From sequence record MW822008.1: DNA of 64,000 nucleotides; one strand, 5' to 3'. The position numbers were made by a program, and so were the translations under genes. The notes under the pieces are model-generated. The model made no database searches and was not told the origin of the DNA. It saw nothing but the letters and a program-made list of their open reading frames with translations. Below are positions 1 to 64,000 of the stretch, in pieces. The first letter of the stretch is position 1; each line of letters opens with the position of its first letter.

Positions 1-30
1 AGTAGGCAGAGGAAGTCTGCCGTACTTTTT
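1..30 (+). terminator. Hairpin plus T-run at window start
   Basis: AGTA-GGCAGA/TCTGCC-(G)-TACT stem followed by TTTTT. Confidence 0.5.
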
Positions 31-126
31 AGTTTCCAAGCTCCTTTTCCATTTTTCAAATTACATCAAATGTAATCAAAAGTAATCACGCAATGATTAG
101 TACTGAATTATTACTTTCACCTTAAT

Positions 127-168
127 TTCAATTACCCTTTTACCCGTCGGGGTAAAATTCAATTACCC
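127..168. repeat. Hairpin TTTTACCC-GTCG-GGGTAAAA flanked by direct repeat TTCAATTACCC
   Basis: 8-bp inverted repeat 138-145/150-157; direct repeat 127-137 and 158-168. Confidence 0.8.
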
Positions 169-365
169 CTTGAGGCTCCAGAAAAAAGTTGGTTAGTACT
201 CCATCCTAAATCTCGATCCTAAAAATTTTGGAGTACCTATGAAATAAAAGTTGGATCTTCGAAAGTTGAAATTTACGTTGGGACGTTTATGATTTGTGGG
301 ATATAATGATGTTTGTAGACGGGTAGTTCTCAAGAATATCAGTACTGAATAATGAAAGAAAGTTA

Positions 366-393
366 TTGACATTATGATTCAGTACTGTATAAT
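366..393 (+). promoter_or_regulatory. sigma70 promoter with no downstream ORF
   Basis: TTGACA-16bp-TATAAT followed by the usual CTACATAG start motif. Confidence 0.8.
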
Positions 394-398
394 GTTCT

Positions 399-510
399 AC
401 ATAGCTTCAAGGGTGATGAGTTGCTGCGAACAATTCATTTACTCTACCTCCTGTCGTGAGACAGTACAGAAAAGATAGTTCCTCCTGTGGTGGTACATCT
501 TTTTGAACCT
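399..510 (+). ncRNA. Candidate structured small RNA
   Basis: Follows promoter 366-393; stems 411-444 and CTGTC-GTGA-GACAG (451-464); two CCTCCT motifs; no ORF. Confidence 0.45.
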
Positions 511-584
511 CATATGAAAATCGTAATAACAGTACTGATATTAACAGAATGGTGTCAGTACTGATTTTAATCTAAAGCATTATG

Positions 585-604
585 CCACCAGCACAAGCTG
601 GTGG
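585..604. other. Inverted pair of Chi sites
   Basis: CCACCAGC-ACAA-GCTGGTGG; GCTGGTGG is the enterobacterial RecBCD Chi sequence. Confidence 0.85.
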
Positions 605-616
605 ATTCCCTCTAAC

Positions 617-692
617 AGTATTCAGTACTACATGATAGTCTTCATCCTCCTAGGGTAACATAGTGAGGGCTATGATGGCAGTACTGAATACT
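617..692. repeat. Long imperfect inverted repeat
   Basis: Perfect 13-bp arms AGTATTCAGTACT/AGTACTGAATACT plus inner ATAGTCTTCAT/GTGAGGGCTAT stem. Confidence 0.75.
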
Positions 693-802
693 CCCTTTCA
701 AAAGATAGATCTATGGTATAGTACTGACGGATTTTGGGCGTAGTTACCCTGGATGGATTTTGGACGTAGATATGTCTAGCCCTCCAGAAGTCTGGAAGTA
801 AA

Positions 803-914
803 GATGGCTATCCATCTAGACGGCTAAACGGCTAGATTTCTGGATGGCTAGATGGCTAGACGTTTGGACGGCTAAACGGCTAGATGGTTACACGTCTGGA
901 AGTATAGACGGCTA
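803..914 (+). repeat. 8-bp-period tandem array, consensus (G/A)A(C/T)GGCTA
   Basis: 14 units in register at 803+8n; near-consensus units at 803, 819, 827, 843, 851, 867, 875, 883, 907. Confidence 0.85.
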
Positions 915-1074
915 AATCAAAATTTTATTTTGTTTTTCCAATAGTTCCCCTACCGCGTGGGGATAGTTTCCCCGCAGTATCTGGAGTTAGATTTTTCTGA
1001 ATCTGGAATCATTATCTTATAAACTGGGGGCAATGTCAACGACCTGGACGGATATTTTTAAAAATTTTTTCAGT

Positions 1075-1164
1075 ACTGAATTTTGGGCGTAACTATGCAC
1101 CCGGTGGGCTTGAGTCTTTCTCGACTTGATGGAACTATTATACAGTACTGAAAAAATAAAGCAA
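1075..1164 (-). ncRNA. sRNA family 1 unit with own promoter
   Basis: Minus-strand TTGCTT-16-TATAAT (1164-1137); GTC-GAGAAA-GAC hairpin; core CCCACCGGGTGCA (1108-1096). Confidence 0.6.
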
Positions 1165-1198
1165 TACCCTGGAAGCAAAAAAGTTTTAATTAATTTGC

Positions 1199-1286
1199 TT
1201 GCTATCCTGGGCCGGACTATGGTACTATATTTCAGTACTGAGAAAGTGCGTTTACCTGCTAGGGTGCGGGAGTGTATCCTTTTTTT
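1199..1286 (+). ncRNA. sRNA family 1 unit (variant core)
   Basis: TTGCTA..TACTAT promoter; GTACT-GAGAA-AGTGC hairpin; CCTGCTAGGGTGCGGGAGTGTATCC (1255-1279) then T7. Confidence 0.55.
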
Positions 1287-1294
1287 ATATCTTG

Positions 1295-1380
1295 AATTTT
1301 GGGCGTAATTTCGCACCCTCTGGGGTTTCCGCTTTCTCGCGTCTATGTAGTAATTATACGCTTTTTCAGGATCAAGTCAA
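1295..1380 (-). ncRNA. sRNA family 1 unit
   Basis: Minus-strand TTGACT-16-TATAAT (1380-1353); CGC-GAGAAA-GCG hairpin; core CCCCAGAGGGTGCG (1325-1312). Confidence 0.6.
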
Positions 1381-1756
1381 TACCTAAAAACAAAATAATT
1401 GAAAATAATTTAACGCGTTTAAACGGCCCGTAAAGCCCTGGAATGATTGGAATGGTGCAAATGTATAGCTTATGTGTATTAATGCGTTAGAATGCGTCTG
1501 AGGCCGTTTTACGGGGTATGGGGATGATTTGGTGGATTGATTCAGTACTGAATAATAGTACTACTATATAGAAAGATAGTTCCCCTGGATGGTTGCAGTA
1601 CTGAATGATAGTACTGAATAATAGTTCCCCTATATAGAAAGAAAACTATTTTAAAAGTATTTGTAGAAAGTACTTGCAAACTAAGTTTAACGGCGTATAA
1701 TGTTTTACATCGAGAGCGGGAACACTTCCCGCTACATATTACGAGAGATTAAAACG

Positions 1757-2119
1757 ATGGCGACTCAAATCACTAAAATTATTGCTAACCTGGTTAACTT
1801 TCGCGACGAGATGAAAGATCTTCCGGCAGAAACGGTAAAAATTCACATTTCAGCTTATCGGGAACTTATTGCAATGTTACCGCTTAAGCGTGAACAATAC
1901 GCCGCGACCGTGATGCTTGATGCGATGATCCATAAGATGATCGCCAGTGATTTAACGATGGTTTATCAGTATATGGGCGAAAATTTCGCGGTGTATAGTA
2001 AACCAGTACCAGGAATGGAAAGTACAGAAGTATTACACGGTTTAAATTTAAAACAAGATGCATGGGATAATATGCCTCGTTTCCTGGTATGGGCTGACAG
2101 TGGCAAAATTTACGAATAA
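1757..2119 (+). CDS. Early hypothetical protein
   Basis: ORF; start moved to the ATG after the cassette hairpin. Confidence 0.85.
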   Translation: MATQITKIIANLVNFRDEMKDLPAETVKIHISAYRELIAMLPLKREQYAATVMLDAMIHKMIASDLTMVYQYMGENFAVYSKPVPGMESTEVLHGLNLKQDAWDNMPRFLVWADSGKIYE

Positions 2120-2213
2120 GTTTAATAAAGTACTTGCAAACTAAGTTTAAAAGCGTATAATACTTTACATCAGGTGGGGAATAGTTCCCCACTATAATTA
2201 AGAGATTAATTTT

Positions 2214-2447
2214 ATGAGTACTATTTTAACTGTTTCTCAATCCGTTGCACTGACTGACCTATTAAACGCTTTAAGCCGTTGCACTGAGGTTGGCTTGTTT
2301 GATGTGGTTGACGTTGCACCGGACGTTATTAATCATTTTTGTGATGCGATGGAAGAATGTAAGGAAGATGATAGCCGTATGATGGCGGTCGCCTTTGAGG
2401 AAGTACAGCCGGGTGAGATCAAAGGTTTACCAGTACTGAAAAAATAG
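2214..2447 (+). CDS. Early hypothetical protein
   Basis: ORF after cassette promoter. Confidence 0.8.
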   Translation: MSTILTVSQSVALTDLLNALSRCTEVGLFDVVDVAPDVINHFCDAMEECKEDDSRMMAVAFEEVQPGEIKGLPVLKK

Positions 2448-2529
2448 TACTTGCAAACTAAGTTTAAAAGCGTATAATACTTTCTATCAGGTGGTGAATA
2501 GTTCCCCACTATATAAGAGGATTAAAAAA

Positions 2530-2769
2530 ATGGCTAAATCAAAAATGTTCTTAGGTCACAAAAACAAAACTCATTGGAATGTAAGCCTTTGGATTAATAA
2601 CGATGAGTCATTGTACCGGTTGGCCCAGGACTTTATTAATGATAGCACTAATCGCAATGATGCGGCCCGTCATATGATGCTATTTTTAGAACAGACTGGA
2701 CAAGATAAAACACCGGACGGATTCAAATATAGCACTACTGCGATCCGTGCGGCGATGGTTGGAATGTAA
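2530..2769 (+). CDS. Early hypothetical protein, paralog of 4570
   Basis: Shares GHKNKTxWNVSLWINNxESLYRLAQ and TPDGFKYSTTAIRAAMVGM. Confidence 0.85.
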   Translation: MAKSKMFLGHKNKTHWNVSLWINNDESLYRLAQDFINDSTNRNDAARHMMLFLEQTGQDKTPDGFKYSTTAIRAAMVGM

Positions 2770-2855
2770 TAGAATTTATTTAAAGTACTATCATTTTTTT
2801 GCGATAGTACTTTATAATAGTGTTTTATTCATACACCAACGATAAGGGTAACAGC

Positions 2856-3122
2856 ATGAATATTAAGTATTTTGCGACGCGTGAACAAGCTCGGATCGCC
2901 GCACGCCAGGACGGGGCAACGTTTAAAGATATGGGAGCGGGATCGGCAAGTGGTGAACGTTGGGCCATTGTAAAGCGTAGTACCGCCAGATCATTACAGT
3001 ACTGGTTAGCGGCGTTAAAAAGTCCCGATAGTGTATCGCGTCGAGTGGTAGAAATAAAGCTCGACCGAAAGGGCAACCGCGTGACCGTGTACCGTACTAA
3101 AAAGATTGCAGTACTTGAATAA
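2856..3122 (+). CDS. Early hypothetical protein, paralog of 15228
   Basis: Shares ATRExARIxARxxGAxFKDMG and DRKGNRVTVY. Confidence 0.8.
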   Translation: MNIKYFATREQARIAARQDGATFKDMGAGSASGERWAIVKRSTARSLQYWLAALKSPDSVSRRVVEIKLDRKGNRVTVYRTKKIAVLE

Positions 3123-3209
3123 AAAGTACTTGCAAACTATGTTTAATGGCGTATAATGTTTTACATCGAGAGCGGGAACACTTCCCGCCTATAACCTGGA
3201 GTAATAAAA

Positions 3210-3440
3210 ATGACTAATATGTATATGACTGAAGTTAAAACCGTAAAAGATACTACCACGAATAAAACTACTTACTTACAGCGGATCTGCGGTGTATGGC
3301 AACGTATCAGCAAATCAAAGTACTTTAAATTAACATCATATGCAAACCGTTCGGATTCATTCAGTACTGAAATAAAAGGTAATAAAGTACACCAATACGG
3401 CACTTATTATTATTATAGCCTGGACGCGATTGCAGTATAA
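3210..3440 (+). CDS. Early hypothetical protein
   Basis: ORF, GGAG RBS, cassette promoter. Confidence 0.8.
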   Translation: MTNMYMTEVKTVKDTTTNKTTYLQRICGVWQRISKSKYFKLTSYANRSDSFSTEIKGNKVHQYGTYYYYSLDAIAV

Positions 3441-3470
3441 GCAGTTTACAAATCTTTACAATTGCCGGTA

Positions 3471-3555
3471 TTGACTTATTTTGTCAGTACTGGCATAATG
3501 TATTCATTGGCAGATAAGCCGTAGCCCATAGGGTGCGGGAGTGTATCTATAGAAA
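3471..3555 (+). ncRNA. sRNA family 1 unit
   Basis: TTGACT-17-CATAAT; GGC-AGATAA-GCC hairpin; core CCCATAGGGTGCGGGAGTGTATCT (3525-3548). Confidence 0.6.
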
Positions 3556-3564
3556 AAGTAGTTT

Positions 3565-3643
3565 ATTACAGTTACAATTGTGCACCCGGTGGGTTAGCTG
3601 TTGTCATGGGGTATATTATGCCAGTACTTGATAATGCTGTCAA
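3565..3643 (-). ncRNA. sRNA family 1 unit
   Basis: Minus-strand TTGACA-17-CATAAT (3643-3615); core CCCACCGGGTGCACAATTGTAAC (3593-3571). Confidence 0.6.
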
Positions 3644-3723
3644 TACTTTTTTTACTATTCAGTACTGAAAACTATTTTTAAAAAGTACTTGCAAACTATG
3701 TTTAAAGGCGTATAATGTTTTAC

Positions 3724-3798
3724 ATCAGGACGGGGAACGAAATAAGTAACTCCCCGTTAAGTAGCCCAGGAGTAAGGCACACGAAAAACTCCCCTGAT
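3724..3798 (+). ncRNA. sRNA family 2 (three-way junction)
   Basis: Lies between two promoters with no ORF; stems ATCAGG/CCTGAT, ACGGGGA/TCCCCGT, GGAGT/ACTCC. Confidence 0.65.
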
Positions 3799-3866
3799 AA
3801 AATAGTTTGACAAATGTTTTTAAAAGCGTATAATACTTACATCAACTACTGAATGAGGGTTACAAA

Positions 3867-4478
3867 ATGAAAACTATCACTACTACTACTTTCGTTATGG
3901 ATTTTTCTGAATTGAACGCAGAACAAAAAACGTCAGCTATCGAACTGGTTCGGGAACGTGAAAAAAACTTAAACGATGATTATTTTTCTGAAAGTGAAAT
4001 TGAATACTATAAAGAAACAGTACTACCGGAATATGGCATTAATGACGCTGATTTACGTTTCAGTGGCTTTTGGTCCCAGGGTGACGGTGCATCAATCAGT
4101 ACTGACCACGTTGACGCAGTGAAGTTTTTACGCAAGGTAAGAGCATTAACTAAGTATCGCTCAATCCGTCACTTGCTGAATGAAGATGATTTGGCGATGA
4201 GTGTAAAGCGTTCTCACTCCCACTACTCGCATGAAAACACTGTAAGCGGGTACATTGAATCGGCTTACACTGATTTAACCGCAAAACAAGAAACGTTAGT
4301 TAATGAGCTTGAGGAACTACTCACTGAAACTATTCGTGAATTATCCCGCAAGTTGTACCGTGATTTAGAGAATGCATATGAGGATCAATTCACTACTGAA
4401 AACATTACGGCACTGATTGAGGGTAACGAATATCAATTCAATGTTATTGATGGCGTAGTAGAATCAATCGAATATTAA
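3867..4478 (+). CDS. Conserved protein of the FSGFWSQGDGA family (often auto-labelled antitoxin of TA stability system; function unproven)
   Basis: Motif FSGFWSQGDGAS and N-terminal FSELNAEQKTSAIE. Confidence 0.6.
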   Translation: MKTITTTTFVMDFSELNAEQKTSAIELVREREKNLNDDYFSESEIEYYKETVLPEYGINDADLRFSGFWSQGDGASISTDHVDAVKFLRKVRALTKYRSIRHLLNEDDLAMSVKRSHSHYSHENTVSGYIESAYTDLTAKQETLVNELEELLTETIRELSRKLYRDLENAYEDQFTTENITALIEGNEYQFNVIDGVVESIEY

Positions 4479-4569
4479 TTTAAAAAAGTACTTGCAAACT
4501 AAGTTTAAAAGCGTATAATACTTTATATCGAGGCGGGGAGTGGTTCCCCGCTCAAACGAGGATTTAAAA

Positions 4570-4809
4570 ATGGCTAGTTCTAAAACTTACAACGGGCACA
4601 AAAACAAAACTCAATGGAATGTAAGCCTTTGGATTAATAACGGTGAGTCATTGTATCGGCTTGCACAAAGTTGTATCGCACAAAGTAGAACTAAAGATAT
4701 TGCAGCGGAATGTATGTACCGCAGATTAAAAGCCAACGGTACTACTACAACGCCGGACGGTTTTAAGTATAGCACTACTGCGATCCGTGCTGCAATGGTT
4801 GGAATGTAA
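4570..4809 (+). CDS. Early hypothetical protein, paralog of 2530
   Basis: Shared motifs with 2530. Confidence 0.85.
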   Translation: MASSKTYNGHKNKTQWNVSLWINNGESLYRLAQSCIAQSRTKDIAAECMYRRLKANGTTTTPDGFKYSTTAIRAAMVGM

Positions 4810-4866
4810 TATTCAGTACTGAGATAATGGCGGGTAATAGTTCCCGCCTTTACTGAGGGTTATCTA

Positions 4867-5127
4867 ATGAGTAAAGTAATAAAGTACAATGTGTTAAGCA
4901 AATCATTGTCTATCAGTGAATGCACCGATGGTTTTTGGATGTACGATGAAACGCGTGGCATGAATTTAGCTATGCGTGCAAAAACTGCTGAGGCGGCGTA
5001 TATTCAAGCACTGGAATACTACCAGGAACGTTTAAAGGAAGTAGAAGAAGATTATAAAAGCCTCAAAGCGAAAGTAGATCATTTCGTCGGTCAATTCATC
5101 GAGGAAGACGACGACAAACAATATTGA
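4867..5127 (+). CDS. Early hypothetical protein
   Basis: ORF, GAGG RBS after hairpin. Confidence 0.8.
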   Translation: MSKVIKYNVLSKSLSISECTDGFWMYDETRGMNLAMRAKTAEAAYIQALEYYQERLKEVEEDYKSLKAKVDHFVGQFIEEDDDKQY

Positions 5128-5213
5128 AAAAGTACTTGCAATTAGTTTTCAGTACTGTATAATGGTTTACATCAAAGGGAGAAATGGTTCTCCCTGGTAA
5201 TGAGGAAAATAAA

Positions 5214-5435
5214 ATGGCTAATATCACTACTCTTTCCCAACTGGAAGCACTGGTTAAATCTATGCGGGAACATGCCGACAAAATCGGCGTACAAGATCCA
5301 GCCGTTTGCTTCTGCGACGAATTGAATGATGATACCCTGGTAATAGCAGAAGTCCAGGACGTTTCTAACTATTCATCGCGTTACACTGGCGGCGTAGCAA
5401 ATAAAGGTGACTTCTGTTTATACCTTACAAAATAA
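5214..5435 (+). CDS. Early hypothetical protein
   Basis: ORF; start after cassette hairpin. Confidence 0.8.
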   Translation: MANITTLSQLEALVKSMREHADKIGVQDPAVCFCDELNDDTLVIAEVQDVSNYSSRYTGGVANKGDFCLYLTK

Positions 5436-5440
5436 CAACG

Positions 5441-5470
5441 CGGGGAGATAATAACTCCCCGTTACTTTTT
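5441..5470 (+). terminator. Intrinsic terminator
   Basis: CGGGGAG/CTCCCCG stem then TTACTTTTT. Confidence 0.65.
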
Positions 5471-5479
5471 CAGTACTGA

Positions 5480-5570
5480 ATCATTTAATAGACGGATCTA
5501 TGCACCCGGTGGGTTAGTGACTGTTTCGTCTTGATGTAGTAATTATGCCAGTACTGGATGCACTTGTCAA
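5480..5570 (-). ncRNA. sRNA family 1 unit
   Basis: Minus-strand TTGACA-17-CATAAT (5570-5542); GAC-GAAACA-GTC hairpin; core CCCACCGGGTGCA (5513-5501). Confidence 0.6.
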
Positions 5571-5678
5571 CAACTATTTTTCAAATACTTTTTATTAAAA
5601 TACTTGCAATTAGTTTTTAAACGCGTATAATGTTTTGCATAGGGGGAGCGGTTCCCCTGGTAACTAAGGAATAATAAA

Positions 5679-5915
5679 ATGCTTGAACAAATCAAATCAA
5701 CGTCTTCGAATGTAACGGGAACGGTAGCACACTTTACTAGTGATGAATCGCGGGGCGTTCCCTATTGTGCTGTACATGTAAACACTGAGGGTAACTACTG
5801 GTTTACGGTTTACGGATCATATTCATTTGGACGGCCAGGGCATCAAAAAATTCTGGATAAAGTACAACCAACGGGTAAAAATATCACTGCTGAAATGTTT
5901 TATAAAAAATCATAA
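5679..5915 (+). CDS. Early hypothetical protein
   Basis: ORF, AGGA RBS. Confidence 0.8.
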   Translation: MLEQIKSTSSNVTGTVAHFTSDESRGVPYCAVHVNTEGNYWFTVYGSYSFGRPGHQKILDKVQPTGKNITAEMFYKKS

Positions 5916-5999
5916 AGTACTTGATAATAGTTTTTAGTACTGTATAATATTTTACATCGCAAGGGGGAGCGGTTCCCCCTGGTAACTAAGGATAATCAA

Positions 6000-6299
6000 A
6001 TGAAAATTGCAATCATCGCCCTGGCTTTATCTGTTTCCTCTTTCGCTGTTAATGCGTCATTAGATGTAAGTAGTGAAAAATTCATTCAGTGCACTGTTGC
6101 AATGACCGATGAAAGTACTGGCGAGATTGTTTTAAAGGATTTAGAGATCCAGCCGGAAGCATTTAAAAACGGGCCGTTCCATGAAGAAGACGAAAAAGGT
6201 AGCACGACAATTTATTACGATGCAAGTACTAAACGCGGTTCGGTCACTGTTATGGATACTGAGAAAGTAACTCATACTGGCGTTATTAATTGCCGTTGA
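6000..6299 (+). CDS. Exported protein with signal peptide
   Basis: MKIAIIALALSVSSFAVNA Sec-type leader. Confidence 0.75.
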   Translation: MKIAIIALALSVSSFAVNASLDVSSEKFIQCTVAMTDESTGEIVLKDLEIQPEAFKNGPFHEEDEKGSTTIYYDASTKRGSVTVMDTEKVTHTGVINCR

Positions 6300-6320
6300 T
6301 ATATACTACGGGGTAACATC

Positions 6321-6551
6321 ATGACTAAGCGAATTGTTTTACTTAACGAAAGCAGTACTACACAACTACTTAACGCCGTGCATTATGATATTGAAACGAG
6401 CGTTAATCTTATCAGTACTGTAGTACTGTTGGACACTGGAAAGGTCGCCAATGATAAAGCGATTGCAGGTATACTAACGGATCTTGAGCCTGGTAGCAGT
6501 GCATCAATAACGTTAAATGGTAAAGTGTTTAACATTTTACTTACTGATTAA
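6321..6551 (+). CDS. Early hypothetical protein
   Basis: ORF. Confidence 0.75.
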   Translation: MTKRIVLLNESSTTQLLNAVHYDIETSVNLISTVVLLDTGKVANDKAIAGILTDLEPGSSASITLNGKVFNILLTD

Positions 6552-6557
6552 GTACAT

Positions 6558-6579
6558 AGCCCACCTGGTGGGCTTTTTT
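6558..6579 (+). terminator. Intrinsic terminator
   Basis: AGCCCAC/GTGGGCT plus T-run. Confidence 0.85.
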
Positions 6580-6668
6580 GTTTTTGTAGTATCGTAGTAC
6601 TGAGATACTTTGAAAATAGTTTTAAAAAAGTAGTTGACATTACCGCAGAAAAGCGTAGAATGTATTAC

Positions 6669-6741
6669 ATCAAGACGGGGAGCACTAAGTAGACCGCCAG
6701 TAAGTCGAACGAAAAACTGGACACGTCGAGAAAACTTTGAT
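6669..6741 (+). ncRNA. sRNA family 2 variant forming the 5' leader of gene 6785
   Basis: ATCAAG/TTTGAT closing stem, TAAGTAG linker, CCAGT/ACTGG stem with AAG-N4-ACGAAAA loop. Confidence 0.55.
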
Positions 6742-6784
6742 ACACTAATAAACGTAAACTAAACTTTAATTGAGGATTTATAAA

Positions 6785-7267
6785 ATGGCTAATGTAAAAT
6801 CATTCATCAAAGCACTGGTAGCAAATGAAACTAACGTCGCGGCTGAGATCCTGGCTGAACTGGATAACGATACCATGAAAGCGGTACGCAATAATTTTAA
6901 CATCGCGTACAGTACTGCGAAAGAACTACAAGCAAATAAAGCGGCAGAAATTGAAGCGGCAAAGGCGGCCCGTGAAGCAGAACTACAAGCAACAATCGAA
7001 AGTATTCAGGCGGCAGTAGTTGGATTGGATCTGGAAGTAGTTACAGAGATGGCACAAAAAGCCCTGGCGGTTAAGTATGGGGAAGACAAGCCAGAAGTAA
7101 AAGCCAAAAAATGGATTCAGGAACGCGTAGCGGTAGTACTGGACAACGGGGAAGAATATCTGATTCCGGTGCGTGGTAACTGCATTGCGGTAGTACTGGA
7201 CGCGATTAACTCCAGTGGTATGACTCGCGAGGAATGGATCGAAGCTCATCGCAAAGTTGAAGCATAA
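6785..7267 (+). CDS. H-NS-like protein (tentative)
   Basis: Ala/Glu coiled coil, GLD linker, C-terminal DNGE..RGN..AV...A....G.....W, resembling the H-NS DNA-binding domain by eye. Confidence 0.45.
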   Translation: MANVKSFIKALVANETNVAAEILAELDNDTMKAVRNNFNIAYSTAKELQANKAAEIEAAKAAREAELQATIESIQAAVVGLDLEVVTEMAQKALAVKYGEDKPEVKAKKWIQERVAVVLDNGEEYLIPVRGNCIAVVLDAINSSGMTREEWIEAHRKVEA

Positions 7268-7288
7268 CAATTAAAGTACTGAATCACT

Positions 7289-7314
7289 AGCCCACTTATA
7301 CAGTGGGCTTTTTT
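7289..7314 (+). terminator. Intrinsic terminator
   Basis: AGCCCACT/AGTGGGCT plus T-run. Confidence 0.85.
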
Positions 7315-7333
7315 GTGTTTATCGTTTACCAGG

Positions 7334-7424
7334 CCACCAGCACCGCCTAGAAACGATTCTAACGCATTAAACTGATTATCTGATGCATCACCCTAGCTGG
7401 TGGCGTTAAGGTCGTTAGAATGCG
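7334..7424. other. Intergenic island with an inverted Chi pair and ATTCTAACG/CGTTAGAAT inverted repeat
   Basis: CCACCAGC 7334-7341, GCTGGTGG 7396-7403, arms at 7356 and 7413. Confidence 0.75.
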
Positions 7425-55191: not shown

Positions 55192-55204
55192 ACTAATAGA
55201 GGCG

Positions 55205-56556: not shown

Positions 56557-56558
56557 TT

Positions 56559-56690
56559 ATGTCGAAGAAAGTTAACAATTTCGTACAGAAACACATGAAT
56601 GAGTTTAATAAACCTCAGACACATGTGGATCGTAAAAAAGAAATGAAAAATGGTAAAGTAAAACACAAGTCGAGATTTATTCTCGACTAA
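56559..56690 (+). CDS. 43-aa basic phage protein
   Basis: MSKKVNNFVQKHMNEFNKPQTHVDRKKEMKNGKVKHK; GGAG RBS. Confidence 0.7.
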   Translation: MSKKVNNFVQKHMNEFNKPQTHVDRKKEMKNGKVKHKSRFILD

Positions 56691-56719
56691 TTTTTTGTCT
56701 AAATTTATGAGGATTGTAT

Positions 56720-57568
56720 ATGTTAGACATTTCAGATTTTCTTAATTTTAAAAAGTATTCAGTACTTGAACATATCAACGAATTTCTGAATTCTACTACA
56801 CCATTTGGTATCAGTACATCAGATGCATACGATGGATATACAATCTTCCCATACAATGACTTTCAAATTTCCGTCAAAAAAGGTATTACAAAAGAAGTTG
56901 CAATTCGTGATGTAGTAATGTATAGCGATTCTTCTATTTCTTACTGTCATGATGTGAACAAGTTTGAATCTCTTGCAACACCTAATTGTTCATACTACAA
57001 ATCCCATGACACGATGATGTATAAAGAACAACATATCAATGGTGTTTCGTTCTATAAAACTAGCAGTGATAAATCATATACATCTAGAGATGATTTTGGA
57101 AAATACACATGTACTATGCACACGGATAATGAAAAAACAAATTACACTCATTCATTCGAGTCCAAATTCCAAGAGAGTGAAGTTTCAAATATCACTATAC
57201 AAGAACAGGTTTCAGAAGGCATTGTATATCGTAGCACTGCATTCTTTCGCATGAAAGATATTGCCACAGGCAGACCAATGATGTACAATATTGATATATA
57301 CATGAAAGGTGATATATCCGAAGTAGTGATTAGTACTGGTTATCGTGAAAAATATACAGTTACAATGGAATCACCAGATGCATCATTAGTTCACCTCTTT
57401 AACAATTTATATACATTCCAATTCGAACTTAGTTTCGATCCAAATGAATATCAAATATTTGATATATTAAAAAGTAATATTATTAATAAGTTAGAATATT
57501 ACTACAAGTTAGGTGGTAAGATGTGCATAGTTAATACTATGTTACATAACATAAAAGAAACATTATAA
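56720..57568 (+). CDS. Hypothetical protein
   Basis: Long ORF; GAGG RBS. Confidence 0.8.
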   Translation: MLDISDFLNFKKYSVLEHINEFLNSTTPFGISTSDAYDGYTIFPYNDFQISVKKGITKEVAIRDVVMYSDSSISYCHDVNKFESLATPNCSYYKSHDTMMYKEQHINGVSFYKTSSDKSYTSRDDFGKYTCTMHTDNEKTNYTHSFESKFQESEVSNITIQEQVSEGIVYRSTAFFRMKDIATGRPMMYNIDIYMKGDISEVVISTGYREKYTVTMESPDASLVHLFNNLYTFQFELSFDPNEYQIFDILKSNIINKLEYYYKLGGKMCIVNTMLHNIKETL

Positions 57569-57584
57569 ATCTGGAGGATTTGGT

Positions 57585-57878
57585 ATGGATACTAAATTCA
57601 AAATTATTTTTAAAACTAAGCCGTATATTCCACATACAGCAGAACGTTTTATACCACATGGTGCTGAGGAAATTATTCACCAAGATGGTACTAAGTTATA
57701 CCTTGTTCCTTGTTCTTATGAACGTGCAGTAGAAATGTTACTAATGAATGCTAGACTATGCAAAAACAAGTACATTAGTTACCTATACAATGAACATATT
57801 TTAGATTTCAATGATGAAAATATGTTCATTCTAGCAATCGAGGATTTTGATAACTGGTACAATATTATTAAAATCTAA
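57585..57878 (+). CDS. Hypothetical protein
   Basis: ORF, GGAGG RBS. Confidence 0.8.
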   Translation: MDTKFKIIFKTKPYIPHTAERFIPHGAEEIIHQDGTKLYLVPCSYERAVEMLLMNARLCKNKYISYLYNEHILDFNDENMFILAIEDFDNWYNIIKI

Positions 57879-57886
57879 TGAAAATA

Positions 57887-57925
57887 ATGTGAACATATTA
57901 GATTCTTGTGATATAATGTTCACAT
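57887..57925 (+). promoter_or_regulatory. Extended -10 promoter overlapped by an inverted repeat
   Basis: ATGTGAACAT/ATGTTCACAT arms around TGnTATAAT (57912-57917). Confidence 0.65.
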
Positions 57926-57949
57926 CTTTTTTTGATAACGGAGATATAG

Positions 57950-58336
57950 ATGAATACAAGTTCAATCCTAAAAGCAATTGGTGGTGTTTTACTCATTGAA
58001 GTAAAAGGTGAGCCAAAGCTATGCTGTTTAGAAGATATGAAGAATACAAAACACTTCAGTACTGGTCAGATTTTCAATGCCATTCGTATTCTAAATGACA
58101 AATCCATTGCTGATTATGGAAAAGTTTGGCCTGTATATCAAAATGCTGATGGTGATATCAGTACTGATTGGAAAACAATTGAGGCGGTACGACAAAGTTG
58201 TGAGAGTGATTGGGACTTCATTGTTGAAGTTTGTGATCAACTACAAGAAGATGTTCCAGAAATTGTCGAACGAAAAGAAGTCCTAGCACGACTTGAAAAA
58301 TTCCGTCACGGAACACTACAGTATAACACAATCTAA
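57950..58336 (+). CDS. Hypothetical protein
   Basis: ORF, GGAG RBS. Confidence 0.8.
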   Translation: MNTSSILKAIGGVLLIEVKGEPKLCCLEDMKNTKHFSTGQIFNAIRILNDKSIADYGKVWPVYQNADGDISTDWKTIEAVRQSCESDWDFIVEVCDQLQEDVPEIVERKEVLARLEKFRHGTLQYNTI

Positions 58337-58385
58337 TCTGCTTATTAAAAATATCTAATTAACATTATATAAAAGGAATTTAAAA

Positions 58386-58691
58386 ATGGAAGACAATGGA
58401 ATGAAATTTGATATGTTTGAAGGTGTACCAGAGTTCGATTTCAACAAACTTGAAGAAGGTGAGGAATCAGAACTAGTCAGTGTTACACTTAAAGCAGATT
58501 CTAAGAAGAAATATTCATCAGCAGTACGTTCACGTTCACAAGAAGAATACGAAACATTTATTGAAAGTATTCATTATGAAACATTCCATCATGCAGATGG
58601 AACTCCATATGAAGTACGTGTAACAGTACTGAAGCCTGAAGTAAATCCAATGGAAAATCTACGTCCTGTTTACTGCTGGGCAAGTCACTAA
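58386..58691 (+). CDS. Acidic hypothetical protein
   Basis: ORF, AAGGA RBS. Confidence 0.8.
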   Translation: MEDNGMKFDMFEGVPEFDFNKLEEGEESELVSVTLKADSKKKYSSAVRSRSQEEYETFIESIHYETFHHADGTPYEVRVTVLKPEVNPMENLRPVYCWASH

Positions 58692-58697
58692 TAAACC

Positions 58698-58730
58698 AAA
58701 GGACGGGATTTGTTATCTCGTCCTTTTTTT
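58698..58730 (+). terminator. Intrinsic terminator
   Basis: AAAGGACGGGA/TCTCGTCCTTT plus T-run. Confidence 0.8.
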
Positions 58731-58742
58731 GTCTGGAGATGT

Positions 58743-59597
58743 ATGAAACTTTATCTAATCGTTGACTACAATAAGGATTATGCTGGTAACTTCACCGAAG
58801 ATTCGGATGGATATTGCACATCGACTAATGTCAATGTACGTAGCAGTAGTGCTCATGAACATGAATCTTGTAAAAATCTAAAAGATTTTATCGCATACCG
58901 AGCATTTGAAAAGAACTTCTGCCGCAGTAGATATTCGAAGTTTGAGTACCCGTTAATTGATGTTCCTGATGATTTAATGTTCCAGTTAATGCTAACTGGA
59001 GTTCAAGATTATGATTACATAGCATATAATCATATTACTAAGAAAATTTATATTGGTACATCATCACATGACACTTCTATGTATGCATCATGCCCAGATG
59101 ATCGAATGAATGATAGAAAATCATACTATAGTGGATCAGTTGGTTTAAATGATTCATTAAATGAAAATTTATTCTTTGAGTATGTTTATGATTACCATCA
59201 TGAGAAAAAAGAACGTGAAGATTACTGTATAGCAATTGATAGTACTAATGGGTATGAAGACGTGAAAGAAGCACTTATGCCGTACATTATTGAAAAGTAC
59301 TACAAAGATTTTCAGTACTGTAGTAATTTTCTAATCAGAAATTCTATTATAATCGGTCGCCAATCTAGTGCATACTCTCAGTACTATAATGATTCACCAG
59401 TAGCATCGGCAAATGAAATGTGTGATATTTTACAAATTCCACGTGAAGATATGGCATTCATTTTTACATCTTTTATTGAAGATGATGAGTTGTATATTAA
59501 AAATAAACACCGTTTCATGCCAAGCAAGATTGAGGTTATTCGAAGTTTTAGTGTTGATATACTAACAAATTTCACAGAAAAAACCGAATATAACTGA
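58743..59597 (+). CDS. Hypothetical protein
   Basis: Long ORF; GGAG RBS. Confidence 0.8.
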   Translation: MKLYLIVDYNKDYAGNFTEDSDGYCTSTNVNVRSSSAHEHESCKNLKDFIAYRAFEKNFCRSRYSKFEYPLIDVPDDLMFQLMLTGVQDYDYIAYNHITKKIYIGTSSHDTSMYASCPDDRMNDRKSYYSGSVGLNDSLNENLFFEYVYDYHHEKKEREDYCIAIDSTNGYEDVKEALMPYIIEKYYKDFQYCSNFLIRNSIIIGRQSSAYSQYYNDSPVASANEMCDILQIPREDMAFIFTSFIEDDELYIKNKHRFMPSKIEVIRSFSVDILTNFTEKTEYN

Positions 59598-59625
59598 GAC
59601 AAATGATAAGTTAATGATATAATAT

Positions 59626-59660
59626 AAGGTGACAACATAATATGTTAGTCACCTTTTTTT
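59626..59660 (+). terminator. Terminator-like hairpin just after a TGnTATAAT (59615-59623)
   Basis: AAGGTGAC-AACATA/TATGTT-A-GTCACCTT plus T-run. Confidence 0.65.
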
Positions 59661-60170
59661 AATCCTGAAAGGTTCCCATAAGGAAATGATTAAAAGCCTA
59701 ATCCACTCGAAAATGTAGAGGGTAGATGAGTAGTCCTTTCAGTACGAACAGCAGATGAAACCCGTTAGATGATGGCATAGTTTGAACCACTCACGGCAAT
59801 GCGGCTGTATAAAGAACTCCAATAGGATAAAGAGAGTTCCTCGATAGACATATAAGGATCGCACCTTACCAATTATCTAAGGGAGATTTCATAAGAAATA
59901 TGCGGTCGGAATTATACAATATAGTTGCGTCCAAATTTTGTGAAATCAAATACAAGTACTGGTCATATGGTATTTGTATTATGTGTCGGGATGTTTAAGA
60001 CCGACGACCGTTGCTACAAGAACCGCGATAGAGAGAAACAGAGCAACCCGCTTTCGTCTCGTAAGAGAATTCGTGATATGAACTATGTGAAGGCCACCAG
60101 CGTCAAACTTTTTTGTTCTTTCCCCTGCGGGGGGGATGAAATATGCTCAAGCAAACCCCGTCAATATTAA
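59661..60170. ncRNA. Candidate large structured RNA (strand not established)
   Basis: About 510 nt with no credible ORF; GC-rich relative to flanks; many stems. Confidence 0.5.
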
Positions 60171-60276
60171 TTAAAAGAAAATAGTACTTGTAGAATTAGA
60201 CATGCGTAGCATGGTAATTCTACTGATGTTGATGAAATCAACGTCACGTATATTCATTGATGTTTCCATAGGAATA

Positions 60277-60822
60277 ATGATGGCATTTATTAGAAAAGAA
60301 AAAACTGTTACTTATAAAACTTTGAATTTTGATGATTGCATTAATCAATCACAAGACGAAGATATCTTTACTGGATATGTGGTTATTAAAGAAAAAGGAT
60401 GCATTTCTTATATAAAGGAATTGCAAAATGGAATTGAAGTGACTTCAGTTAAATTACTTCCTACTCAAAAACCAACAATATCAAAAGCCCAGTATGGTAA
60501 TTATTTTGAAGAAAGATATAGTAATAATTCAATAAGTGTTAAGGCTCATATTATTAAAGGAGAACTAGAAGGAGAATATAGAAAATACAACCCACAAGGA
60601 AAATGTGTTTGGGTTAAATACTTCAATTCAGGATATGATGTAACATCTGAAATTATAGAGTTCTTAGGTTTAAAATGTACCCCTGAGACTATTCACGATT
60701 ATAAGTTCAATACTGAAGAAGAGTTTAATCTGATGATGCGTTACGGTTCACATTTTAAATTTTTATATGAATATAACATTGACAGTAGTACTTTTGATAA
60801 GATAGTACACAACTGTCTCTAA
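60277..60822 (+). CDS. Hypothetical protein with one MORN-like repeat
   Basis: GELEGEYRKYNPQGKCVWVKYFNSG. Confidence 0.65.
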   Translation: MMAFIRKEKTVTYKTLNFDDCINQSQDEDIFTGYVVIKEKGCISYIKELQNGIEVTSVKLLPTQKPTISKAQYGNYFEERYSNNSISVKAHIIKGELEGEYRKYNPQGKCVWVKYFNSGYDVTSEIIEFLGLKCTPETIHDYKFNTEEEFNLMMRYGSHFKFLYEYNIDSSTFDKIVHNCL

Positions 60823-60838
60823 CAAAAGGAATTATATA

Positions 60839-61360
60839 ATGTCGAAGAAGGATGCTTCGAAAAAACATTCAGTACATTTTAGTACTGGAAAAGATAACTG
60901 GACAACTCCAAAGGATTTCTTTGAAGATTTGGATGAACTCTGGGAATTTACACTAGATGCAGCATGTGTCAAAGAAACTGCATTGTGTGATAATTTTTTC
61001 ACTCCAGAAGATGATTCACTGTCACAGGATTGGGGAAATAATATAGTTTGGTTGAATCCACCATATAGTGACTTGAAAACTTGGTTATCTAAAGCAGTAG
61101 ATGCATATAATAACGGGGCAACTGTAGTTATTCTTGTACCCTCAAGAACCGATACAATTGCTTTTCAGGATTATGCTGCTAAAATATGTGATTGTATTTG
61201 TTTTATTAAGGGAAGATTGAGATTTGGTATACCAGAAGAACCCGATAAGAAAACAGATTCAGCACCATTTCCTTCGTGTCTGATAGTACTGGATAAGTAC
61301 TTAACCACTGCTAAAATCAATTATCTTAAATCTCTTGGGTTGGTGATGAAGAATTTATGA
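60839..61360 (+). CDS. Phage N6-adenine DNA methyltransferase (Dam-type family)
   Basis: WTTPKDFF, FTLDAAC, VWLNPPYS (motif IV), VVILVPSRTDT. Confidence 0.9.
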   Translation: MSKKDASKKHSVHFSTGKDNWTTPKDFFEDLDELWEFTLDAACVKETALCDNFFTPEDDSLSQDWGNNIVWLNPPYSDLKTWLSKAVDAYNNGATVVILVPSRTDTIAFQDYAAKICDCICFIKGRLRFGIPEEPDKKTDSAPFPSCLIVLDKYLTTAKINYLKSLGLVMKNL

Positions 61361-61890
61361 AAGAAACATGCGTATTAACTTTTGGACGTGTTAATCCCGT
61401 ACATCGTGGACATGGTTTAGTTTTTGAAAAGGCCAAAACATTACAAGAACAGTACAATGCTGATTTAAAAATATATCTAAGCACCAGTACTGACAATATA
61501 AAAAACCCACTCCCACCTGAACTAAAAATGTATTATACAGAGGGATTCTATCCTTCAGTGCAAGAGAACATCTACACAGAAGACAATCTATTTGATATAA
61601 TGAGAGAACTGGATGGAAAGTACTTAGATGTTCTTTTCATATGTGGTTCTGACCGTATTGATTCTTTTCAAAAAACTCTTGACATGTACAATGGTAAGTT
61701 GTATAATTTTTGTAGTATAAAAGCAATTCAAGCAGGTATTGACCGTAATGTAAGTCAATATAGCTCAACACAAATGCGTAACTTCGCAAAAAATGAAGAT
61801 TTTGATAGTTTTCGTGAGTTTTTACCTGGAAATGACGAGGACTTAAAAATACAATTATTTGAAGACGTTATAAAATACATGAGGAAATAA
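61357..61890 (+). CDS. HIGH-superfamily nucleotidyltransferase (cytidylyltransferase-like)
   Basis: TFGRVNPVHRGH, CGSDR, YSSTQMR. Confidence 0.85.
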   Translation: MKETCVLTFGRVNPVHRGHGLVFEKAKTLQEQYNADLKIYLSTSTDNIKNPLPPELKMYYTEGFYPSVQENIYTEDNLFDIMRELDGKYLDVLFICGSDRIDSFQKTLDMYNGKLYNFCSIKAIQAGIDRNVSQYSSTQMRNFAKNEDFDSFREFLPGNDEDLKIQLFEDVIKYMRK

Positions 61891-61892
61891 TT

Positions 61893-62186
61893 ATGTCAGT
61901 ACTGTTCAAAACCAATCCAGTACTTTGGGATCAAAATGAGCAATCAGGATTTCGTTCCATCCATGTTGAATACAAAGGTAATACTGTAGTTGCAATTATT
62001 GCTAACAAAACTCTAGGAAACTGGACTGCACAGGTTGTTCCTATGGGATATTCTTACACATCTGATGAGGTTCAATTCCTGGCTGAACTATATCGTCAAG
62101 TGCCGTTTATCATTAATGTACTAGAAGGTAATGATACATTATCACATGCAGATGTGATTAATTTTCTTGGAAACTTGCATGTGTGA
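61893..62186 (+). CDS. Hypothetical protein
   Basis: ORF. Confidence 0.75.
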   Translation: MSVLFKTNPVLWDQNEQSGFRSIHVEYKGNTVVAIIANKTLGNWTAQVVPMGYSYTSDEVQFLAELYRQVPFIINVLEGNDTLSHADVINFLGNLHV

Positions 62187-62466
62187 TGAAATAAATCTTA
62201 CAGGATATTTTTTACAAGAATCAATGATTAAATTTAGTGATAAATTTTCAGTACTGGATGGTATCGAAATGTGGCATGTCAAACCACTGTTCCACACTTT
62301 CAGTAAAGAGCACAAAATGTTATTGACTGAAGCCAGTAAATCAAATAACATATGTGAAATCAAAATTGGTGTAAATGTCTATAAAGGGATGGTTATCTTT
62401 TTTGACAATAACAGCAACTACTTTTATATTGTTAAGGAGCATTACGTTGACAAATACAAATACTAA
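62179..62466 (+). CDS. Hypothetical protein
   Basis: ORF; start trimmed. Confidence 0.7.
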   Translation: MCDEINLTGYFLQESMIKFSDKFSVLDGIEMWHVKPLFHTFSKEHKMLLTEASKSNNICEIKIGVNVYKGMVIFFDNNSNYFYIVKEHYVDKYKY

Positions 62467-63067
62467 TACATATTTCCGTTATCTTCGATTAGGTCTTTCC
62501 CTACGTCCGATCCGTGGAAAGTGCGATTCACTCGCTGACCTTGACTATGCATATGCATTACATCATGAAGGTGTACAGTATGTATTGGGTGATTATGGTG
62601 AATTTGAAGAAACAAATGACAGTACTGGAATTAATGCTGGTGTAGAAAATCTTAACAACATTGCTAACAGTTCTCGCCATGACATTGTGTTACAGATTCA
62701 AAACTTTATTGAGCAACACACAGGCAAACGTGTTTGGTGCTATGTCGGTACTGATGCACAAATGTCAATTTCATTCGGTAACGATGAAGGATATGTTGCA
62801 CAGCTTATTATGGATTTTGAATCTGAAGAGAAGTTTTTAGAATTCAAAGAAAAGATTATTCAGTCACTTGTTGATATGGGTATCCCCGAAGATAAAATGC
62901 CAGAAGTTCAAAACATTGATGAATTTGTTTTGATTCCATCTGATGAGAAATATGATGCAATGTTTACTGCTCTTAATATTCCAGGAGTTATTGTGGAGTA
63001 CTTTGATGATGGTGATGATAGTATCTATATCGATCTAGATGACGATGACGATGACGACGATGAATAA
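62447..63067 (+). CDS. Acidic hypothetical protein with poly-Asp tail
   Basis: TTG start 7 nt after AAGGAG, in frame with track ORF 62375. Confidence 0.75.
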   Translation: MTNTNTNTYFRYLRLGLSLRPIRGKCDSLADLDYAYALHHEGVQYVLGDYGEFEETNDSTGINAGVENLNNIANSSRHDIVLQIQNFIEQHTGKRVWCYVGTDAQMSISFGNDEGYVAQLIMDFESEEKFLEFKEKIIQSLVDMGIPEDKMPEVQNIDEFVLIPSDEKYDAMFTALNIPGVIVEYFDDGDDSIYIDLDDDDDDDDE

Positions 63068-63072
63068 TGTAC

Positions 63073-63101
63073 ATAGCCCGACATAAGTTCGGGCTATTTT
63101 T
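63073..63101 (+). terminator. Intrinsic terminator
   Basis: ATAGCCCGA/TCGGGCTAT plus T-run. Confidence 0.8.
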
Positions 63102-63113
63102 GTAAGGGGATAT

Positions 63114-63389
63114 ATGAATTATAAAGTTCTACAATATACATACAGTGTTTTGTTTGATTTACATCACAATGGAAGATATCTCAATACAATACGAGAAAAC
63201 ACATTCACTCATACTATCTGGATTAATCACTTAATAATGATACGTGAATATTTTGTTAATAGTGAGATAATCATTCGTGGTAAAAAACAGAAGATAGAAC
63301 AAGTTAATAGTTTTGGTGGTAAATTAGTACTATCATTTATAGATAGTAATACTAATGAAAGATATAGTATAGATTTGGTGGACATATGA
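63114..63389 (+). CDS. Family C paralog
   Basis: LQYTYSVLFDL N-terminus. Confidence 0.75.
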   Translation: MNYKVLQYTYSVLFDLHHNGRYLNTIRENTFTHTIWINHLIMIREYFVNSEIIIRGKKQKIEQVNSFGGKLVLSFIDSNTNERYSIDLVDI

Positions 63390-63652
63390 ATTATAAAGAT
63401 TTCCTACTAACATACAAGATTATTCGAGATTTAGCACACGACAATGATAGCCCTAGTCTAGAAGACACATGCACTGAAATGATTCATACGATTCGTGGTA
63501 AGATTAAAAAAAAATTCAGTACTGTTATTATTGGTGATGACCATGCAGAATTTTCTGATATAATCATTAGACGTGATGGTAAAGTTGAGGTTCAGTACTA
63601 CACTGATTTTGGATTTACCAGTATTCCGTTGGAGATATTCCCTTGGGATTAA
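63386..63652 (+). CDS. Family C paralog
   Basis: FLLTYKIIRDL. Confidence 0.75.
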   Translation: MNYKDFLLTYKIIRDLAHDNDSPSLEDTCTEMIHTIRGKIKKKFSTVIIGDDHAEFSDIIIRRDGKVEVQYYTDFGFTSIPLEIFPWD

Positions 63653-63954
63653 ATTTAAATGATATACAATTCACTTATAAGATCCTATATGATTTGTATG
63701 ATGTATACCTTGTTAGTAACAACATAGGTTCACATAACCGATCCAAAGAACAACCATTTATTGATTTATATATTGAGTACTTAGATTCAGTAGGTGAATA
63801 TATAAAAAAGAATTACAGTACTTTTATCGATGGAAATGATAAATTCGATTTCTATGGTGTACAATCATATAATGGTATAATCCATGTTCAATTTCAGGAA
63901 ATAACCGATAGGGGATTTATCGAGATTAAAGTTGTGAAGTTGGTGAATTTATAA
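63643..63954 (+). CDS. Family C paralog
   Basis: LNDIQFTYKILYDL. Confidence 0.8.
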   Translation: MGLNLNDIQFTYKILYDLYDVYLVSNNIGSHNRSKEQPFIDLYIEYLDSVGEYIKKNYSTFIDGNDKFDFYGVQSYNGIIHVQFQEITDRGFIEIKVVKLVNL

Positions 63955-63964
63955 GAGGTTACAT

Positions 63965-64000
63965 ATGTTATTAAATGATATACAATTCACATACAAATTT
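63965..64000 (+). CDS. Family C paralog, truncated by window end
   Basis: MLLNDIQFTYKF; GAGG RBS. Confidence 0.7.
   Translation, partial: MLLNDIQFTYKF

Follow-up and report, generated by a model that had tools for sequence, protein, structure and literature searches.

AGTACT as a conserved, highly iterated palindrome and candidate recognition word in Escherichia phage BF17 and its RaK2-like relatives

Results

The stretch of DNA analysed here (64,000 nucleotides in full; the window) corresponds to bases 1-64000 of Escherichia phage BF17 (MW822008.1, Asteriusvirus, 383,493 bp) at 100% identity, and the element of interest is the palindromic hexamer AGTACT, which is scattered through it in large numbers. 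The annotated genes of the window all lie on the plus strand and nearly all encode small hypothetical proteins. When the ends of the whole BF17 record were compared, bases 1-20,590 matched bases 362,904-383,493 with 0 mismatches, indicating that positions 1-20590 of the window form the left-hand member of a pair of long direct terminal repeats and that the BF17 genome is linear, with 362,903 bp of unique sequence. The record is labelled circular in GenBank despite carrying this exact 20,590-bp direct repeat at both ends. Published terminal repeats of relatives measure 20,993 bp in fEgEco12 (PMC13070987), 20,668 bp in Sharanji (PMC11895373), and 22,456 bp in CBB (PMC5259590).

An earlier examination of the letters of this DNA (the sequence-only reading) claimed that AGTACT is over-represented in coding and non-coding DNA alike and listed 17 positions for it within bases 1-1700. 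Every one of these positions is exact, and the excess is larger than was claimed: the window contains 252 copies versus 17.0 +/- 3.9 expected from dinucleotide-preserving shuffles (none of 100 shuffles reached 252), a 15-fold enrichment. The three most enriched hexamers in the window are AGTACT, CAGTAC, and GTACTG, and under a maximal-order Markov model, which already absorbs AGTAC and GTACT, AGTACT still has the highest z of all hexamers (252 versus 211, z 7.2). Among the 583 GTAC tetramers in the window, 252 (43%) are flanked by A and T versus ~11% expected, indicating that the excess of AGTACT is not a GTAC bias. The terminal repeat holds 135 copies (6.6 per kb overall and 11.1 per kb in non-coding DNA). 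As a correction to the sequence-only reading, the word does not run through the window uniformly: 20,459-25,721 and 28,380-36,672 contain zero copies.

In the unique genome, 988 copies of AGTACT were counted versus 123 expected (8.05x), or about one copy per 370 bp. All but two of the 5-kb bins hold 4-42 copies, including those that cover structural and replication genes of either strand. Enrichment climbs with the length of the symmetric word, from 8x for AGTACT to 59x for CAGTACTG, 141x for TCAGTACTGA, and 482x for the 12-bp palindrome TTCAGTACTGAA; the window itself holds 63 copies of CAGTACTG and 18 of TCAGTACTGA. The core is preceded by C in 44% of sites and followed by G in 48%, and CAGTAC, at 9.3x, is the most enriched hexamer of the BF17 genome. 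As for other words in the unique genome, Chi (GCTGGTGG) occurs in 21 copies plus 13 on the opposite strand, 14-16x over base composition, an excess that probably accompanies the over-representation of codon-driven, CACCAG-type words in general; both GATC and CTAG are ~2-fold depleted.

Coding DNA of the window contains 170 copies (3.1 per kb, distributed over the three frames as 67/41/62), in agreement with the claim that several copies per kb continue through the coding arrays in different reading frames, and non-coding DNA contains 82 (8.4 per kb). The sequence-only reading had named beforehand the loss of the excess under codon or GTAC control as the outcome that should count against it, yet the excess persisted: inside open reading frames (ORFs), 169 copies were found versus 52.3 +/- 6.0 when synonymous codons were shuffled and 21.3 +/- 4.3 when codon order was shuffled. 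In the same ORFs the dipeptide S-T occurs 131 times versus 71.5 expected and V-L 165 times versus 94, and AGT-ACT encodes S-T 68 times versus 18 expected. Together with the excess over codon shuffles, these dipeptide biases indicate that the signal acts on DNA and has reshaped proteins. The presence of AGTACT in all frames and on genes of either strand, and its greater density in non-coding DNA, likewise support the conclusion that it is a feature of the phage DNA itself and not of the encoded proteins. About 85% of copies are genic, occupying either strand and every frame at a distance from promoter-like hexamers, and are individually conserved.

Conservation was examined in alignments of BF17, ph0011, and EC.P1, three lineages with ~85% pairwise identity. 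Between these lineages, 73-77% of AGTACT sites are kept versus 44-52% of sites for 179 composition-matched hexamers, the exception being retention into ph0011 (57-58%). Between genera (~72% identity; RaK2, GAP32, CBB, Munch, and fHe-Yen9-04), 36-52% of AGTACT copies occur at the orthologous position versus 15-19% for controls. AGTACT sites are thus held by purifying selection acting on individual sites. In the ph0011 lineage, compared with positions 25,742-68,987 in window numbering, about a quarter of the shared sites have been lost. The three-way comparison gives 13 AGTACT-to-AGTTCT changes in ph0011 and the pairwise comparison with BF17 gives 21; of the 18 pairwise changes that fall in called ORFs, 14 are synonymous GTA-to-GTT changes. 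Because ph0011 was sequenced by Illumina and the changes are mostly synonymous, sequencing error at modified sites was rejected as their cause and they are taken as genuine substitutions. SD-15_S21, an error-prone assembly of unrecorded platform and weak evidence for that reason, shows no surplus of differences at AGTACT. From 64 to 355 kb, sites are also spaced more evenly than by chance, with 147 pairs closer than 120 bp versus 190.8 +/- 14.2 expected (0 of 1000 simulations as low), and control words put through the same test show no over-dispersion. The even spacing in the gene body is mild.

Enrichment follows a lineage of phages. AGTACT is enriched 5.7-7.1x in RaK2 (Klebsiella), GAP32 (Cronobacter), CBB (Pectobacterium), XbC2 (Xanthomonas), fHe-Yen9-04 (Yersinia), and Munch (Salmonella), most relatives having been sampled over 41-50 kb rather than as whole genomes. 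It is the top palindrome in all six samples, the top hexamer in four, and the third and fifth hexamer in the others; a further sample of CBB holds 199 copies versus 13.7 expected. All five RaK2-like lineages sampled are enriched. Distant jumbo relatives are depleted, with 3 copies per 50 kb in PA5oct, 3 in Atu_ph07, and 0 in XacN1 versus 13-17 expected, which fits ordinary restriction avoidance, and phage T4 (12 versus 16.7) and a sample of E. coli K-12 (11 versus 12.6) are neutral. The trait thus follows the phage lineage and not the host. Lytic phages are expected to avoid restriction sites; in BF17 and its clade the opposite is seen, AGTACT being 8-15x over-represented, many-fold and genome-wide, in non-coding DNA and in all frames of coding DNA, as in an iterated palindrome. 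A full-text literature search found no paper tying AGTACT or ScaI to these phages, and its clade-wide iteration appears to be unreported.

The sequence-only reading also held that AGTACT abuts the -35 or -10 element of early promoters, often in pairs 20-24 bp apart, and this proved accurate. A promoter scan of the terminal repeat recovered 109 sigma-70 sites versus 67 +/- 8 in shuffles, ten of which match the consensus at 12 of 12 positions. Relative to the first base of the -10 hexamer, AGTACT in BF17 starts 10 times at -27, where it overlaps the initial T of the -35, and 14 times at -7/-8, directly against the -10; a further 4 copies start at -30/-31 and 3 at -18. The terminal repeat of CBB, a member of another genus, shows this layout too, with 18 copies starting at -27 to -29 and 15 at -7/-8, in 22 of 38 promoter-like sites. 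The base between AGTACT and the -10 is G or T and differs between BF17 and CBB, whereas the hexamer itself is kept. Paired promoter sites lie 20-24 bp, or about two helical turns, apart in BF17 and in CBB, and AGTACT spacings of 20-24 bp occur 29 times versus 14.3 expected. Most promoter-like sites outside the terminal repeat are without AGTACT. The papers examined on the terminal repeats of Asteriusvirus and CBB make no mention of promoters bracketed by AGTACT (PMC13070987, PMC11895373, PMC5259590); in the text supplements of the CBB paper the hexamer occurs only three times, at least in part within a terminator table. A second class of promoter, present also in the CBB terminal repeat, has its -35 (TTGACT) within a G+C-rich, terminator-like hairpin followed by TATTAT (10,266-10,301, 13,872-13,907, and 17,140-17,175), and looks like a fused terminator and promoter.

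The two AGTACT-free domains instead carry the asymmetric variant AGTACA, at a comparable density and oppositely oriented (Table 1). The plus:minus ratio of AGTACA is 47:0 in 28.4-36.7 kb and 1:11 in 20.6-25.7 kb, and outside both domains its orientation tracks gene strand. In the second domain, AGTACN occurs 49 times, 47 times ending in A and 0 times in T, and the preferred flanks are those of AGTACT, a preceding C and a following G. In ph0011, the homologous stretch has the same AGTACA pattern. AGTTCA is enriched 7x in the AGTACA domain. Retention of AGTACA between BF17 and ph0011 (15 of 35) is slightly above that of controls (31%). CBB DNA adjoining its terminal repeat shows no domains of this type. 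The first domain falls among 26 arrayed, diverged paralogues of ~70 amino acids (median 35% amino-acid identity), and the second, by homology search, is conserved across the genus. Recent acquisition of DNA was rejected as the cause of the AGTACT-free blocks, given the ~35% paralogue identity, the genus-wide conservation, and the presence of the variant word. The island between the domains has no origin-like or iteron-like repeats, and cumulative GC skew shows no turn there. The variant domains suggest an oriented half-word, (C)AGTAC, as the functional unit, and CAGTAC is also the top hexamer. The paralogue array itself (21,175-28,897) comprises ~25 tandem, translationally coupled genes with a further member at 42,278, and the three members tested had no match in Pfam.

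Table 1. Features of the window, in window coordinates
Feature	Position	Strand	Remarks
Left copy of the direct terminal repeat	1..20590	+	~50 small early genes served by closely packed sigma-70 consensus promoters
Non-coding left end	1..1756		17 AGTACT, mostly within the longer palindrome TCAGTACTGA(A)
Early promoter, two AGTACT 23 bp apart	3661..3716	+	Copies flank an A/T-rich upstream element, the second overlapping the -35; same layout at 10367-10422, 13970-14025, 17241-17296
Early promoter, AGTACT at both elements	5131..5163	+	AGTACT overlaps first T of the -35 (TTGCAA), a second abuts the -10 (TATAAT); same layout at 5916-5948, 15147-15183
Early promoter, doubly bracketed	8022..8057	+	AGTACT, TTGACA, spacer, AGTACT, CATAAT; near-identical copies at 8314-8349, 11132-11167
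First domain without AGTACT	20591..25720	-	TGTACT (AGTACA on the minus strand) makes up 11 of 16 GTAC
Island between the two variant domains	25721..28380		17 palindromic AGTACT (6.4 per kb)
Second domain without AGTACT	28381..36671	+	47 AGTACA versus 2.9 expected (16x), 3-9 per kb, frames 18/14/13
Coding arrays	36672..64000		100 AGTACT (3.7 per kb), all frames
Small phage-type N6-adenine methyltransferase (PF05869, NPPY motif)	60839..61360	+	Only potential DNA-modifying enzyme of the window; nothing ties it to AGTACT

Several other features were noted. The non-coding left end contains, at 786-913, ~16 tandem 8-bp units (GGCTAGAT, GGCTAAAC, and similar) that may be a packaging or end-recognition array. 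Two early genes of the terminal repeat (15,686-15,940 and 12,260-12,517) have recognisable domains: one encodes a ParE-like toxin domain (E 6e-11) and has a homologue in the terminal repeat of CBB, and the other encodes a DksA/TraR-type zinc finger. A conserved non-coding element of ~470 nt is present in at least 4 copies per genome, each within a ~700-bp unannotated gap, and is common to genera (window 59,690-60,170; BF17 115,445-115,974, 200,085-200,557, and, partially, 312,094-312,286; fHe-Yen9-04 sample 24,300-24,818). Its alignment contains long invariant blocks, and the fold predicted by RNAalifold from five sequences only has 75 pairs, of which 32 show compensatory changes. The element matched no family in Rfam and is probably an undescribed large structured RNA.

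Discussion

The growth of the preferred word to 12 bp, the conservation of individual sites, their fixed places in promoters, and the restriction of the trait to one clade point to a recognition site for a two-fold symmetric, clade-specific factor. The interpretation favoured here, though at somewhat less than an even chance, is that AGTACT is the selected recognition word of a putative clade-specific DNA-binding factor that marks phage DNA and gates early promoters. The word would have AGTACT as its core, the 12-bp palindrome TTCAGTACTGAA as its full form, and (C)AGTAC as its oriented half, and the reader would be a sequence-specific DNA-binding protein with two-fold symmetry, clade-specific and most probably encoded by the phage. 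Bound genome-wide, such a protein would set phage DNA apart from that of the host, where the word is ~12 times rarer. In the terminal repeat, where pairs of sites stand about two helical turns apart against the -35 and -10, its occupancy would control the access of host RNA polymerase, and the simplest effect would be that early transcription is shut off once the reader has accumulated. That the reader is a binding protein, that it originates from the phage, and the direction of its effect on transcription are what we infer from the sequence patterns. Traits typical of operators are present, namely a symmetric preference extending to 10-12 bp, a fixed position in promoters, and pairs of sites in helical phase, and the rise in enrichment with symmetric length looks like that of a dimer operator. 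The sequence-only reading had proposed a genome-wide self mark, either as a binding site or as a site of base modification; action at the level of DNA and selection on sites bear out the genome-wide character of the word, its fixed promoter places fit a binding site for a transcription or DNA-organising protein, and no sign of base modification at AGTACT was seen. The terminal repeat, the sharing of the trait by a whole clade, and the asymmetric variant of the two domains had escaped that reading.

A number of observations weigh against this interpretation. No DNA-binding candidate was found in scans of 36 proteins, of which 28 were compared with Pfam (six genes of the AGTACT deserts, four other window ORFs, neighbours of the sigma factor, a weak helix-turn-helix-like hit, and others) and 8, conserved between the BF17 and CBB terminal repeats, with Pfam and PHROGs. 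Any process of selection or bias would lead to more sites in non-coding DNA. Within a genome, some of the promoters are paralogous copies of one another, so that their shared layout does not represent independent events and could be inherited. Finally, a simple homodimer sits awkwardly with two domains that lack the palindrome entirely and have AGTACA alone, oppositely oriented in each.

These variant domains are better suited to an explanation that we consider unlikely, in which an enzyme of replication or DNA processing reads the oriented half-word (C)AGTAC on a single strand and the palindrome places it on both strands at once. Its most concrete form is an extended site for the T4-type primase of the phage on the lagging-strand template; otherwise, a nicking enzyme or loading factor could be the reader. 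T7-type primases effectively require 5-nt template sites, and T4 primase begins at GT-containing triplets. The position of CAGTAC as top hexamer (9.3x) agrees with such an enzyme, as do the one-stranded variant domains, whose opposite polarity on either side of the island is the pattern of diverging forks, and the ~370 bp spacing with its mild evenness, which suits priming. It leaves the fixed -35 and -10 positions in two genera unexplained, however, and the sixth base, which should be free in the AGTACA domain, is A in 47 of 49 cases and never T. Moreover, the island lacks origin-like repeats and a turn in GC skew, and CBB has no such domains beside its terminal repeat. Somewhat less probable again is a site-specific modification of the DNA at AGTACT, by methylation or otherwise, that is then read, for instance to distinguish incoming from newly made DNA at early promoters, or that protects from restriction of the ScaI type. 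AGTACT is the classical type II site of ScaI, and E. coli has a ScaI isoschizomer, Eco255I, from which a phage with ~1000 AGTACT sites would need protection. Status as a target explains neither the 8-fold enrichment nor the even spacing, and a symmetric preference that reaches 10-12 bp is more operator-like than that of a type II enzyme site. Only two DNA methyltransferases are recognisable in BF17 by motif scan and Pfam, a Dam-type enzyme (PF05869) and a C5 enzyme (PF00145). PF05869 enzymes usually target GATC or show no sequence specificity, and the family is common in lambdoid and Stx phages; the Dam-type gene was rejected as a marker of the clade, the family being widespread in temperate phages. 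That BF17 encodes two methyltransferases (PMC7247149) nonetheless speaks for modification, as does the Dam-type gene order kept in CBB (non-coding gap, hypothetical gene, Dam, cytidylyltransferase). The DNA of RaK2 was reported to resist methylation-sensitive enzymes, but the methylation was reported at CpG, which is absent from AGTACT (PMC3622015). fEgEco12 DNA is cut as predicted by ten enzymes, which argues against bulk hypermodification (PMC13070987), and SD-15_S21, weak as it is, has no surplus of differences at AGTACT.

The position of the word in promoters, fixed relative to the -35 and -10 in two genera, raises the prospect that AGTACT is an extended part of early promoters seen by host or phage-modified RNA polymerase, the genic copies being by-products. 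With ~85% of copies genic and individually conserved, and most promoter-like sites outside the terminal repeat devoid of AGTACT, this is improbable. A reader from the Enterobacterales host, such as the nucleoid-occlusion factor SlmA, with phage DNA blocking or unblocking division, is more doubtful still. Nearly all of the sampled phages that are enriched infect Enterobacterales, and relatives on Pseudomonas, Agrobacterium, and X. citri are without enrichment; furthermore, the 12-bp SlmA site GTGAGTACTCAC shares its six central bases, and 8 of 12 positions, with TTCAGTACTGAA (PMC3020112). SlmA, though, requires a G at position 1, a T at position 2, and a purine at position 3 (PMC3020112). At position 3 the phage sites have C in 44% of cases and G in only 10%, GT is found to the left of 47 of 988 sites (4.8% versus 5.8% expected), GT.AGTACT.AC occurs only twice, and GAGTACTC reaches 1.05x while CAGTACTG reaches 59x. 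T4, which has the same host, is not enriched, and XbC2, recorded on Xanthomonas, is enriched nonetheless. On flank composition, and since BF17 is without a SlmA homologue, SlmA sites were rejected. Least credible of all is that the word has no function and arises from a mutation or repair bias of the very-short-patch type or from codon and dipeptide usage. One-letter neighbours of AGTACT are indeed enriched ~1.5-2x, but the excess outlasts codon controls, sites are kept about twice as well as control words and are evenly spaced, and two old diverged blocks carry a different word, the paralogues of the one block measured having a median amino-acid identity of 35%. The deamination neighbours AGTATT (1.20x) and AATACT (1.07x) are not depleted, so that the signature of a repair bias is absent from neighbouring words. 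Neither repair bias nor a codon artefact is the main cause.

Against known systems, the closest phenomenon would be HIP1, the highly iterated palindrome GCGATCGC of cyanobacteria, and the closest mechanistic parallels would be TF1 of SPO1 and p6 of phi29. Like HIP1, AGTACT is palindromic and short, exceeds expectation many-fold across the whole genome, occurs in non-coding DNA and in every frame of coding DNA, and is conserved within a lineage. HIP1, however, belongs to cellular genomes and is usually discussed along with cognate methyltransferases and repair bias, whereas the phage word has no evident cognate methyltransferase and no repair-type signature in its neighbours, is also built into promoters, and has an asymmetric variant confined to two domains. 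TF1 and p6 are DNA-binding proteins, encoded by their phages, that coat the phage genome and act as repressors of early promoters; the genome-wide binding and early-promoter control proposed here would work alike, again in a lytic phage whose terminal redundancy is rich in strong early promoters of the host type. TF1 selects DNA by hydroxymethyluracil and p6 by bendability, neither by a defined palindrome, and no HU-like or p6-like gene was found in BF17. An exact long direct terminal repeat with many small genes and consensus sigma-70 promoters is common to T5, SPO1, Asteriusvirus, and CBB. Chi, KOPS, and DNA-uptake sequences are over-represented, functionally selected genomic words, and they resemble AGTACT in being short, in their high and fairly even density, in the selection on many weakly important copies, and in serving to mark or process the DNA that carries them. 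They differ in being asymmetric and polar, the phage word being mostly palindromic and polar in two small domains only. The SlmA site GTGAGTACTCAC is likewise a 12-bp palindrome with an AGTACT core, scattered over the chromosome and read by a dimeric helix-turn-helix protein (PMC3020112), but its outer specificity positions are GTG versus TTC in the phage, in which SlmA-type flanks are the least used.

Conclusions

The bracketing of -35 and -10 elements by AGTACT is a type of early promoter that was previously undescribed and is common to genera. AGTACT is also a simple sequence signature by which the clade may be spotted in metagenomes, and several of these phages have been proposed for therapy or biocontrol, making a signal that pervades their genomes worth understanding. 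The interpretation preferred above predicts a hitherto undescribed component of jumbo phages, a reader of AGTACT. Lytic phages are expected to lose short palindromes, yet this clade has gained ~1000 copies of one, at a cost to its proteins, and has kept them over deep divergence. A bolder proposal, which we regard as speculative and more probably wrong than right, is that the genome carries a sequence-coded address, by which unmodified phage DNA is told from that of the host through AGTACT and AGTACA and one or more predicted dedicated readers. If so, transcription control, replication priming, or protection would be directed to phage DNA only, and the two AGTACA domains would represent a second reading mode or a second reader.

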